A DNA stretch of 59,082 bases, counting the filler, from Platydemus manokwari (Eukaryota): assembly GCA_037951405.1 (NCBI GenBank). It is 5 parts of 5 records of this genome, joined end to end, with 100 filler letters (N's around TTAATTAATTAA, not from the genome) between each part and the next. Parts side by side here need not be neighbours in the genome. Positions count along the whole stretch, not along the records: positions 12,081 to 24,293 come from JBBMOY010245561.1; 4 more parts are not named here. The stretch is one strand, 5' to 3'. Positions 15,301 through 21,300 of this stretch are shown here, piece after piece. The notes below the pieces were generated by a model, which ran no database searches, was not told the DNA's origin, and worked only from the letters and a program-made list of their open reading frames with translations. The position numbers and the translations under genes are program-made. The stretch's first letter is position 1; each line of letters starts with the position of its first letter.

Positions 15301-18300
15301 GGCTAGAACAAGTGATGATTTTCCAGATCCCGTCCGCCCAACTATTCCCACCTTTTCCCGAGGATTAATTGTAAAATTTAGGTTTTTCAATATCAAATCT
15401 TGTCCTTCACGATATTTTGTTGAATAATTGATAAATTTGATCATTCCATCAGGCCACGAATCATCAGGTTTTTTATCAGCAATTTCCCATGGAGCCTAAC
15501 AAAGTAAAACGTATTCGATTTAATATCATATAAATAAATCAAACTTCAGGAGTCATATGAGAATATTCTTCAATTCTTTCCACTGATACGATGTTTGCTT
15601 CGACTTCTGAGCTCATTCTTACTAACCAATTCAAAGTTTGAGTGATGCTCAAAGCGTAACTAACTGATAGACCGACCAAACCCGCATTCAAATCAAGACC
15701 TTTATGCAAACTTAACACAGCAAATATTGCAGCAATGAAAACAATAATATTTCCAATTGTTTCTAATATTATTGCTAACCATCTAAGACAAAAAGAAAAT
15801 ATTATAAAATACAATGTTGGTTTGTTATTTTACAAAGCAGTTCATTCATTTACATTGAAAGTATAAAACGTTCAAAATGAAAACTAATCATGAATACATG
15901 TAAGTCATCATTAATAAAATCATGATAATGAAATTCTTGAAATAAACATAATTTAAAAATATTTATTAGAGTTACTTGGTCAAATACTTAATTTTAATGG
16001 ACGCGTAAACGTAATGAGTCTTGGATATATACATTTATACACACACACACATATATAGGATTGGAACAAAAGTCTTGTCCGACAGAAAATAATATTTATT
16101 TAATCAATAAAGATACGTAAATTTGTAAATATAAACAAAACATAATTAGTCTGTAAATCTAAAAAATTTCAATATTTTATGAAGAAATGAGGCACCAGTT
16201 GTGTGGAAACAATTTTGAAAAATTCCATTTCCTTCACAATAACACTCAAAATAAGGTTGCCGAGATCGGTTTTACAGTAAAAATGACGTAAAATCTATAT
16301 CTGTGTGAGTAATGTTAAGCTATGCTTTTATATTCTATTTGTAACAATACTATGTTGCAATAAAATCTTTTTACAAATTTCCACATCTGCCCTGTATAAG
16401 TCGCTACTATTTTATAACACGCGCATTGAAATCTAATTGAAAAGTCACGACATCAAATTATCTATATTTAACAACAATAATTTTAACAAAATTTATGTAC
16501 TTCGATATGAATTTATAAAACTTTTTTGATTAAAATTTTTGAACTCTCACACTCTACTTGCTTTAAATAAATAAATTCACTTTGGGGCACATAACGCGTG
16601 GGATGGGATATTTACCAGAAAATACCATTATTTAATTATGAAAAGATTTGTAATTAGATTATCTATATTTAACGAATTCAATCTATTTTTTTAATCTTCA
16701 TTCTAATAAATATTAGTATATTCATCACTGTCACTAACCAGATTTCTTTAATCAAATTTTTCAACGGTTTTGTATTTAAAAAAACAATTGAATTGTTACA
16801 ATGATTAATATACAAGTAAAAATTCTACATCATTATTTTTACTCTTGCTCACCTATTAGAAGAGATATTAGCATAATATGCATATGAATTTTTGTCAACC
16901 TTGTCTTCAGACGATTTGATAAATTTCTCGCATAACGAATATGCTCGAATACTTGAAACACCTTGCAGCGTTTCACCAAAATGCGAATAGATTGGAGATT
17001 TGGAAACTGATTCTAATCTTTTCAGCTGTCTAGATGTGGCTACATAAAACCTCTGAATGAATCAACAATATTAAACAAATCCAATCGTCAATTTTAAAAC
17101 ATGCAAGTTGATATTTATATACATTTAATATAAGACATGCACAAACACCAAATTAAAAGGTTCAATCGATATAGTTAAGAATGGGAGATCAGGAATCAAT
17201 ACTATATGTTCCCAGAATTTCATTTACAATTTTGAATACAAAATAATTTATCATTAATTTTAACAAACAAATTGTTTGTTATATTATTAGTTGTATTATT
17301 TTATTGTTTATTCTTGATCTCCCAGTTGTTAATCACTACACCTATTTAATGGTAAGCCGTTAACCTGGGTCAAAACATAGATAACAATTGTGAAAATCAT
17401 GGGAAGAATAATCCAAGGATTTGGCAATGTGACCATTATAAAGACCACAATGGATGCCAAGACTGTTATGAGAAATCCATTGATAAAATGTGGCAGCATT
17501 GTGCCTACTGAATTGAGATCACTGGAGAATCGATTGATTATTCTTCCAATGGGAATTGTGTCAAATAAGGACATTGGCGAATGGAGAACACTATGCAATA
17601 AATGCTTATGAATGTCTCTCGCTGACTTGATGGTAGCATAAGCAAACATTATAGCAGATAAGAGTTGAAACAGGGCTACAAGAAGGATAACACGTTGATA
17701 TAAATAATAAATTCTGATGAAAACTATTTTAAAAAGTTTGATTTCAAAAATTTTAGTATAATAACGGTTTTTTCCAAATTTAAAAATGAGATTTAATACA
17801 GGCATTGAAGTATTTAGTGGAGATGAGATCAAAGCATTTTTACAGTTAAAACTTAGTTACTACCAGGTGGAACTTCATTCTCTCAGATGTCTCTCTTATC
17901 TAGCTTTATCATTGACAATAATTTGTAAAACCTATTATTTAGCAATCTTCTTAATTAATTCGCCTAACGAAAATAAAACTTTTAAAAACAGAAAATGAAG
18001 CTCAGAATATATTAATACAATTATAATGCAAAGTAATCGATAATAATTCCGTAATAATGGCATGTTGTATTCAAAATTGTAAATAAAAAAAGTTGTTTTT
18101 ATTCTTCATTTAAATATACTAAATTATAAAAGAATTTTAAAAATACGGAAAATAAATCACAAAAAATAAACTTAAATTATATATTTGGTGCTTAATCAAT
18201 ACAAAGGAATTTTATCCACTAAAATTGTTTATAAGGAATGAAGTAATTGAAGAAATGAGAAACAATAGAAGAGAAATTTATTACTGATATACCTTTGAAC

Positions 18301-21300
18301 AAAAACATCGTGATAAAAAAAGTAGAAACGTTTTAAGGCCATACAGGGATATTTGTACACATTTCCTAGTTTATAAACGAACTAAATTCGTTATACTTCT
18401 TTATCGATAATATTTATCGAGACTTACATTCAGTGTTCTTGTAAAATTTATGATAATAATGATTAGTATGGTTTAGATTTGTTGATTTGATAAATTATGC
18501 TTGTAAGAGATGACGACCAAGAAGTAAAGTAAGATAGATATGAAGATTTATATATTAAAAAACCTCATAGTTTAAGATAGTTATTAAATTTTATATAATG
18601 AGTTATTCTGTCAATATGTCAGCAGCGGCTCATTATCGTATCAGTAGTGATCTAAAATAAAAAATCAATACATTTATAATCCACCAAAAATAATTATATT
18701 CGATTAAATTCAACTGAAAACCAACGAAACATTGAACGCCGACTTTGTGAAATAGATACTTGCCTTGATTATAAAATATATACAAAAGAGAGGTATCAAC
18801 ACCACTAAAAATAGTGGGATAAACACAGTAATAGCCACACCAGCTTCTATCACTCTAAGCCAACTTTGTAGAAGTGATTCGATTGCATTGGGTAAGACAT
18901 GATCCATAACTCTCATGTCCCCAGCAAATCGATTCAGTATTCGACCAACGGGATTGACATCAAAGAAAATCGGAATGGACATTCGTAAAACATTGGCCAA
19001 TAGATTATGATGTAATCTGCTGCAAACCATCATAGTGCCATAACAATAAATAAGGAGAGCGAACAGGTTCATAAGTACTGAAAGTTAAATTAATATTTAT
19101 TATGTTAATATTGTACCTAGATTTCGTATCTTAGTGTTACTGAAACTTTTACTTCATCAATGAACGAATAAGAAATCAATGAGAACGAAAATTGGAACAA
19201 AAATGTGTTAAATATGGATTTACCAAGAAAAGATTCGAAAAACCTAAAGAGGAAAGTCAATAATAGTATAAATAAGACAAGATTTTTAAGCAAGCATCAC
19301 AAAAAACCTTTTATCTGCAATATCAATCAATATTTTTTAAAATAATCATTGTTTTTATTCATTTGTTATTATTAGATAATCGTTATGCAACAAATTTCAA
19401 GATTAATCCCAATAACGTTTAGCATCAAAACGACTAAGTTTATAAATTAATAAAATAACTGATTTTATTCGAGTTTAATGGTGTATATATACCGTGCGAC
19501 TCATAAGTCTTCGTCTCTACAACTAAAATGAAACAACAAAACACAATATAATTTATACACACTTATTTATACTCATTGATATTAATTATTATTCAGTGAT
19601 TTATGTACTTTATTTCTTATTAATCAATTGCGTTATTACAATATGGTGGAAACGGCTGGTGATGTTCAATTTTCGCTTGTGGATAGTGTTTATAGTTAGC
19701 CATACAATAGTGTACAAGACTAGTGCCGAAGCTTGCGAAGAAATTTAACAACATTTCAAATGTCCAGCACCAACTTGGACAACAGTGCAATACTGGAAAC
19801 AGAAGTTTGAAGAAACTGGAAACTTATCCACTAAGTTGGGACCACGAAGACCGTCTGAGGAAAGCATGAAGGAAAAGGTGGTAAATTTTGTAAAAGAGAA
19901 TGATGGCACAAACCAACGAGAAACTTCAGAAACGCTTGATCACAGATGTCTCACTATTTTCAATTTTAGTTTTAGAGACCGAGATTTATGAATCGCACGG
20001 TATATCAATCTTCATTCTAGCTCAACATAAAAAAAACATATACATCAAATTGTCTTTGATTTGATTGGCGTGATATGATTGGTGATTTGAAAATGTGTAG
20101 ATAAAGTAGAAATTACCAATAGAAAGATCTTAATTATGGTTGTGAGAACAAAAATAATGAACAAATTACCATATACACTGAATTCAATCAAATAAACCCG
20201 TGTAACACCTTAAACGGATAAAATTTGGAACATTTCGAAAATTCCACTCAAATATCACTGGTAAATCAATTAATCACAGTGGTATGAAATATGATCATGC
20301 ATGAAACAAACACCAAAGCAGGTATACAATGTAAAAATCATCGATAGGAACACCGGAAACCTGATCTCCCAACCAGGTTACATTTAAAAACATCTATTAT
20401 GTACCTGCATCGGAATGAATATTAAGCTGGTAACCATTAAGATGACAACAAAGATCAAAATCTGTTGCCAAGACGAAGCAGACCACAACAATACAAAAAT
20501 TATGCCAATTCCATCGAGGACACATCGTACTAATCCAGAAATAGTAAAATGGATCACTAAATCGAGTTGGGCAATATCATCGCTAAATCTGGTGAGAAGT
20601 GATCCACTACTTATTCTAATAAATGTCAACAGTGGCCAATGGAATAATGCCGTTACAAATTTAATGAAGAATTCATTGCTCACTCCTAACCCTATCAAAA
20701 CAGAACTGGCTCCACACAACATATTTAGCACTCCTAATAACGCAAAGAAATGGCGACTGGAATGATATAAATCATTTACAGTATTACTGACCTTGGATGA
20801 ATCCTAAAACTCCATAAATACCAAGATTCAAATCTCGTTGACGATTGAGAAAAGTTTTGATTTCTGATATTTCGGCCTGACTGGAATTCGGATATTTAAT
20901 CAAATCGGCTAATATTTTTGAATAGTTAGCCGAAATTCTTGATTGACCAGACCATCTGACGAGCCACAGGTTGGCAACCAGATTGAAAGCTTGTGTAACA
21001 ATAAATAGTGACAATGTTATACCAGCAAGACAAAATCCAATAGACCTCAAATAGGCTATATAAACTGACCATTTCACCTGTATAAATATTAGTTTATTCA
21101 ATTAACTATATCCCTATCCTACATTTCCCTCTTTGGATGTCTCTTCTTCAATAAGTTTATCTCTTTCTCTATCTTCTTTTATTCCCATCTTTTCAAGTTC
21201 AAGTTTACAGGTCTGCTCCTTTTCGTTATTTTTCTCATCGAAAACCTATAGAAGAATATTATCAACTTTTGTGTGATTAAAGTGTATTTCAAACTATATG

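Follow-up and report, generated by a model that had tools for sequence, protein, structure and literature searches.

A window of 59,082 nt from the flatworm Platydemus manokwari (GenBank assembly GCA_037951405.1) was found to contain, in the analysed piece at positions 12081-24293 (record JBBMOY010245561.1), part of an MRP1/ABCC transporter gene in which three homologous exons lie in tandem between two constitutive exons. The gene is on the minus strand and is truncated at both edges of the piece. It is highly probable that the three exons form a cluster of which exactly one member can be used at a time. This reading is well supported because frame logic, intact splice sites, matches to the family profile and conservation all point to it, and from these we infer the splicing itself.

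Exon anatomy and reading frame

In the direction of transcription, the cluster is preceded by a constitutive exon of 286 nt (20792-21077, minus strand), which codes for the region of transmembrane helix (TM) 12 and the beginning of TM13. Its 3′ end, …ATC CAA G|gtcagt (…GFIQ + G), is in phase 1. The three alternative exons follow on the same strand, namely exon A (20405-20733, 329 nt; acceptor ttattag|, GT donor CAG|gtacat), exon B (18764-19077, 314 nt; acceptor ctttcag|, GC donor AAG|gcaagt) and exon C (17365-17675, 311 nt; acceptor cttgtag|, GT donor CAG|gttaac). Each of them is entered in phase 1 and left in phase 0, and all three acceptors are of the polypyrimidine-AG type. The copies are separated by introns of 1327 nt (A-B) and 1088 nt (B-C). 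The downstream constitutive exon (16853-17052, minus strand, 200 nt) starts in phase 0 and shows up to 67% identity to metazoan ABCC1-like proteins. A fourth copy was searched for at the locus and none was found. The coordinates and phases of the three exons and their constitutive neighbours had been proposed in the initial annotation, and all of them were reproduced exactly by direct reading and translation of the sequence.

One feature had been missed there. The frame of exon B is kept only by means of a GC donor, AAG|GCAAGT, with the GC at 18763-18762; the next GT, at 18759, would give an exon of 318 nt and break the frame. The sequence AAG|GCAAGT is the textbook consensus for donors of GC-AG introns. 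No U12-type donor was detected among the donors of the cluster by sequence reading.

The length of each alternative exon is 3n+2, and each has one open frame of 103-109 codons, with many stops in the other two frames. When the upstream exon, exactly one alternative exon and the downstream exon were joined, no stop was encountered. The inclusion of zero, two or three alternative exons resulted in 7-20 stops in the reading frame of the gene, the first of them 3-9 codons past the wrong junction. This is in full agreement with the earlier proposal that only single inclusion preserves the frame. At the stop frequency measured in the introns (0.078 per codon), 103 codons in a row would be free of stops with a probability of about 2e-4 per exon. 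The GC content of the three exons (37%) was like that of the constitutive exons, as compared with 25-30% for the introns.

Exclusivity would be enforced at least by this frame arrangement, as skipping or double inclusion of 3n+2 exons would lead to a premature stop, and the wrong combinations should trigger nonsense-mediated decay. In the mechanism that we propose, one ancestral exon of 311 nt, running from phase 1 to phase 0, would have been tandemly triplicated, and the splicing of one copy per mRNA would yield three isoforms of the pump.

Encoded segment and host transporter

The spliced translation displayed the Walker A, signature, Walker B and H-loop motifs of both nucleotide-binding domains (NBD1 and NBD2), and the top named relatives of the protein were MRP1-like proteins. 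Judging from these features, the host gene encodes an exporter of the ABCC1/MRP1 type that looks functional.

In Pfam, the three alternative exons matched the family ABC_membrane, all of them over positions 57-160 of the 274-position profile. Exons C and B scored 63.5 and 43.1 bits, above the cut-off of 28 bits, and exon A scored 26.7 bits (E=5.6e-6). The three peptides also aligned to the same stretch of solved ABCC structures, approximately residues 1027-1136 of MRP1/ABCC2, with PDB matches to ABCC1/2/3/4; the best scores were 55.6 bits for exon C and 56.9 bits for exon B (ABCC2 residues 1046-1136). These results confirm that the three exons encode one and the same segment of the second transmembrane domain (TMD2), as had been stated in the initial annotation. 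We take this segment to run from TM13, most of which it contains, through a cytoplasmic loop bearing the conserved NRFxxD motif to TM14 and TM15. Pairwise identities between the peptides were 21% (A-B), 19% (A-C) and 29% (B-C), exon A being the most divergent copy and exon C the most canonical one. The isoforms would differ in helices that line the translocation path and in the loop that couples them to the nucleotide-binding domains.

Conservation of the exons

An exhaustive search with the exon encoding NBD1 retrieved a gene-model fragment of 541 aa from a relative (UniParc UPI000600ECB6, hereafter P0001), which is 69% identical in NBD1. In this model, an orthologue of the upstream constitutive exon (residues 322-415, 60% identical) is joined directly to an orthologue of exon A. 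The latter is 62% identical to exon A over 109 aa with one gap, a level on par with that of the neighbouring constitutive exon. Both the junction (…GFxQG|xLN…) and the end (…PxQ) are shared, and the identity peaks in the cytoplasmic loop. Exon A is evidently under purifying selection, since an unconstrained exon would be unrecognisable at such divergence. After P0001, the next nearest named proteins were lophotrochozoan MRP1s. Searches of proteins with the exon A peptide alone, limited by its length, gave no match, and residues 287-541 of P0001 used as query, with the same limit, returned only P0001 itself. A Logan contig (L004) was too distant to inform.

Among the nearest matches of the poorly conserved upstream exon was the trematode Paragonimus westermani, in keeping with a flatworm source. 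At the Paragonimus locus (L003, JTDF01021788.1) the upstream exon, which terminates in CAA G|gtaagt and has the phase of its window counterpart, is followed by an A-type exon, a C-type exon and the downstream exon (RFY/KVY), in this order. The A-type exon (24069-24518; …LTRLSFDIADVD…) had exon A as its best match, and the C-type exon (103 aa) had exon C (69 bits); the A-A and C-C pairs were reciprocal best matches. The Paragonimus arrangement differs from that of the window in that its C-type exon is split by one extra intron, its A-type exon carries an insertion of about 40 aa, and no B-type copy was found there. As Paragonimus, too, has an A-type exon ahead of a C-type exon, the split between A and C predates the divergence of the two lineages and is, on this comparison, old within flatworms.

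The initial annotation had held that copies so divergent and yet free of stops imply long-term selection. This is sustained for exon A, by P0001 and by the A-type exon of Paragonimus, and for exon C, by the C-type exon of the latter. It does not extend to exon B, for which no orthologue was found in Paragonimus or in the databases.

Both related public gene models mishandle the cluster, in line with the expectation that standard gene prediction would miss part of it. P0001 is without the Walker A exon of NBD1 and stops 17 residues past the exon A orthologue, a failure to be expected of a predictor that faces frame-shifting alternative exons. In the Paragonimus model (KAF8561375.1, hereafter P0090; 24069-25506 of the locus), the A-type and C-type exons are strung into one protein through a GT donor located 19 nt beyond the canonical exon end. 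The canonical end of the A-type exon reads CAG|GCAGGT in Paragonimus, another possible GC donor. Two mutually exclusive exons have probably been mis-annotated in P0090.

Alternative readings of exon use

Taken literally, P0090 would mean that two homologous exons can be included together through frame-restoring alternative donors, so that the TM13-15 block would be present twice in the pump. A GT of this kind, 13 nt beyond the end of exon A, also exists in the window and would bring exon B into frame. This donor is weak (GTTTTT), however, and P0090 is an unreviewed model of a 'hypothetical protein', while the annotated sea urchin isoforms described below carry one exon each. A two-copy protein would also acquire three extra membrane passes, which, to go by the topology of ABC exporters, would place NBD2 on the wrong side of the membrane. 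Double inclusion is thus considered very improbable.

Several points weigh against the use of all three exons and bear on another reading, in which a single exon, most likely C, is used and A and/or B are decaying leftovers that are spliced never or only accidentally. A search of sequencing runs placed the locus in one DNA run and in no RNA run, and both P0001 and P0090 are gene models and not complementary DNAs. Exon B needs the non-canonical GC donor, which is the sole one in the piece, all other introns being GT-AG according to a spliced alignment to an annelid MRP1. No orthologue of exon B was found in the Paragonimus locus or in protein databases, where a search with this exon, again limited by length, returned only distant fragments (40-42% identity). 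Exon A lies below the Pfam cut-off (26.7 against 28 bits) and its best PDB match reached 29.8 bits. As opposed to this, all copies are open over 103-109 codons against 0.078 stops per codon, and all three have full splice signals and an exon-like GC content. Exon A is conserved in P0001 at the level of its constitutive neighbour, and the A-type exon has been kept in a trematode. Exon B scores 52-57 bits against ABCC2 and ABCC8 of animals, and its donor corresponds to the standard GC-AG consensus; the case for this exon rests on its own intactness and on this strong family match. On balance, the use of a single exon appears unlikely, and mutually exclusive use of the three copies is preferred.

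Relation to known MRP exon clusters

Six isoforms of Strongylocentrotus purpuratus ABCC1, including 'ABCC1beta', were among the relatives returned. When aligned, they differed in one block of 102 columns, which is exactly the segment homologous to exons A, B and C. The corresponding locus (L002) was found to contain five tandem exons of 311 nt each, flanked by AG and GT, running from phase 1 to phase 0 and bounded by …LGLTQG upstream and RFY… downstream. Alternative splicing of 'exon 22' of sea urchin ABCC1 has been published (Gokirmak et al. 2016, Am J Physiol Cell Physiol 310:C911, as cited in PMC9245184). One and the same exon is concerned in the two clusters, bounded identically and with identical phases, and the sea urchin copies have the length of exon C. 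The clusters differ in copy number, five in the sea urchin and three in the window, and in that 311 nt is the exact length of every sea urchin copy, whereas exons A and B have lengthened to 329 and 314 nt. In addition, one window copy has a GC donor and exon A is far more divergent. The sea urchin variants are said to alter the efflux properties of the pump.

Clusters of alternative exons in Drosophila MRP, on which the initial annotation had drawn, are supported by the literature: the D. melanogaster gene (CG6214) has mutually exclusive clusters of two and eight exons (PMC4588896). Competing RNA structures with a downstream docking site have been reported for MRP (Yue et al. 2017, as cited in PMC6071210). 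The fly gene resembles the one described here in being of the MRP1 type and in using one of several tandem homologous exons per mRNA. It belongs to another phylum, and its splicing and RNA structures are experimental, whereas those of the window are predicted. The eight-exon cluster of the fly probably also lies in TMD2. In Caenorhabditis elegans, mrp-1 has four exons of 156 nt, 13A-D (PMC4165533). These are likewise tandem, homologous and mutually exclusive in a gene of the same family, but their length is 3n, so that frame and decay do not enforce exclusivity as they would for the 3n+2 exons of the window. Mutually exclusive exons of MRP have also been reported in arthropods and nematodes, and independent duplications in a number of phyla, with helminths, annelids and molluscs among the groups named, are attributed to Yue et al. 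(2017) in PMC6071210 and PMC7434440.

The novelty implied in the initial annotation was thus overstated. The five-member cluster of sea urchin ABCC1 consists of copies of this exon, matching in boundaries, phases and the length of 311 nt, and the recurrent, independent origin of mutually exclusive MRP exons in metazoans has been published, as far as the papers citing Yue et al. (2017; PMC6071210, PMC7434440) relate it. Exon clusters of this general kind had been established in MRP genes before, in the sea urchin even at the present exon.

In the MRP1 of Aplysia, no duplicate of the region of the window exons was detected. In A. californica KB941924.1 (L001), the first 27 residues of the following RFY… exon were present twice, about 400 nt apart and with 100% aa identity (46721-46801 and 47160-47363), and residues 898-948 were also found at two places. 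These repeats may be assembly duplications or further alternative exons.

In trees of the 103-aa segment, only the grouping of exon A with P0001 was supported; exons B and C and the sea urchin variants had no supported place. In the approximately unbiased (AU) test, a single clade of A, B, C and P0001 was not rejected (p=0.43). Because boundaries, phases and length are identical in sea urchin and window and the tree placement is unsupported, an ancient bilaterian array is admitted as an alternative to the independent exon duplication that the initial annotation had put forward, which is here a candidate origin. In that case, mutually exclusive exons of 311 nt running from phase 1 to phase 0 would have been present in the ancestral MRP1, kept in echinoderms and flatworms, and lost or collapsed elsewhere (e.g. 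Aplysia, vertebrates). We regard this as rather improbable. If it were true, a pump whose coupling loop has been re-designed would result from the strongly divergent A-type exon.

Integrity of the locus and other features of the piece

Contigs of 1663, 1333 and 1750 nt from the DNA run, which looks independent of the assembly, span exons C, B and A with their flanks, showing 0-1 differences and a depth of 11-15. The cluster region is single-copy and contig-supported. The only depth anomaly in the cluster, at 19428-20011, reached a word depth of 20,000-70,000, as against 12-15 in its flanks, and coincides with a mariner-like miniature inverted-repeat transposable element (MITE) in the intron A-B. 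The element (19487-20005, about 519 bp) has terminal inverted repeats of 43 nt that are 88% complementary, and such a word depth indicates thousands of copies in the genome. It bears the remnant of a transposase N-terminus on the plus strand and is outside the proposed mechanism.

The window is stitched from pieces and this high-copy repeat sits between two of the exons, so that an artefact, in which collapsed or mis-joined paralogous genes gave rise to the three copies, has to be weighed. Long contigs with 0-1 differences and uniform depth across all three exons and flanks speak against it, as do the single flanking exons and the occurrence of the exon types in the same order in another species, Paragonimus. 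An assembly artefact is scarcely credible, and the cluster is taken as genuine.

A second trace of transposition was found at 14341-14535 on the plus strand, where an open reading frame of 64 aa, located within the 2.4-kb intron of the MRP gene at 15192-12782, has a match to Pfam DDE_1 (E=5.5e-9; transposase of the pogo/Tigger type) and represents what is left of a transposon. Along the minus strand of 12081-24293, the intron sizes of the gene are bimodal, seven very short ones (42-63 nt) alternating with others that range from 110 nt up to 2.4 kb. The piece did not yield the final coding exon, which would follow …TVLDYD(R) and its donor at 12352, and the 5′ part of the gene (TMD0 and most of TMD1) is beyond the piece edge at 24293. 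No Rfam families or tRNAs were detected in the piece.

Candidate RNA pairings

Steric exclusion between the copies is unlikely, because the introns that separate them are long (1327 and 1088 nt). The introns contain candidate elements for exon choice by RNA pairing, in which a short selector downstream of each exon would pair with one docking region, the intervening exons being looped out as described for Drosophila MRP, Mhc and 14-3-3zeta. Duplex prediction with RNAduplex over whole introns was uninformative (giant interior loops, z ~0) and was replaced by tests of ungapped helices and local duplexes.

Candidate selector A (20344-20375, minus strand) lies 30-60 nt after the donor of exon A. 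Its core, the 12-mer TGGGAGATCAGG (20371-20360), lies 33 nt after this donor and recurs with one mismatch 41 nt after the donor of exon C (17324-17313). The latter occurrence belongs to candidate selector C (17302-17324, minus strand; 41-63 nt after the donor), with the core TGGGAGATCAAG, so that selectors A and C have TGGGAGATCA(G/A)G in common. The exact complement of TGGGAGATCAGG is located in the last intron at 17193-17182. There, CCTGATCTCCCA forms the core, common to both selectors, of the candidate docking region (17178-17245, minus strand). Four matches to the core 12-mer with up to two mismatches were found, against 0.28 expected. Candidate selector B (18061-18088, minus strand) lies in the intron B-C, and would form a 28-nt helix with 17245-17218, adjoining the core complement.

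The helix of selector B scored 51, a value reached by 0/300 shuffles. In local duplexes against an 81-nt docking region, selector A gave -40.7 kcal/mol (0/500 shuffles), the distal selector B -26.9 kcal/mol (2/500) and selector C -25.0 kcal/mol (8/500). The 80 nt directly after exon B showed no pairing with the docking region in this test. A statistic that asks for one common docking position to be hit by the 100 nt proximal to A and by the 100 nt proximal to C was matched in 1/1000 shuffles, and no helix scoring as high as the weakest candidate pairing was found between the last intron and the other 8 kb of the gene. The stem of selector C was present in both the minimum free energy and the centroid folds of the last intron. 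Selector and docking sites are at single-copy depth. This, and the absence of a visible target-site duplication, led to the rejection of a mere inverted repeat of a MITE as the main explanation of the motif.

The topology fits the model of downstream docking, the candidate dock being in the intron downstream of the cluster, as is the docking site of Drosophila MRP. Pairing of selector A would loop out exons B and C, and pairing of selector B would loop out exon C and make the pairing of C a pseudoknot; selectors A and C would compete for the same docking core. The pairings are in silico predictions identified post hoc, after the data had been viewed, and the 12-bp core helix of selector A alone was matched by 117/300 whole-intron shuffles, both of which count against them. 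Exon choice by competing RNA pairings is put forward tentatively, as a plausible form of control.

At the Paragonimus locus, positions 24620-24655, in the intron that follows the A-type exon, show complementarity of 25 nt and 17 nt to the last intron (26958-26982 and 25673-25689), the best score being reached by 2/200 shuffles. This pairing, which is different from that of the window, may correspond to the selector and docking system proposed there and is only suggestive.

Significance

The locus is a compact candidate case of selector and docking control beyond arthropods. Its value lies in the correct annotation of MRP genes of the flatworm type, as shown by the handling of the cluster in both related public models, and in the very divergent yet conserved A-type exon. 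As the alternative exon encodes helices of the substrate path together with the loop coupled to ATPase activity, three versions of it would probably mean three pumps of differing substrate or coupling properties. The cluster bears in this way on the handling of xenobiotics and drugs in flatworms, a group that includes important parasites.

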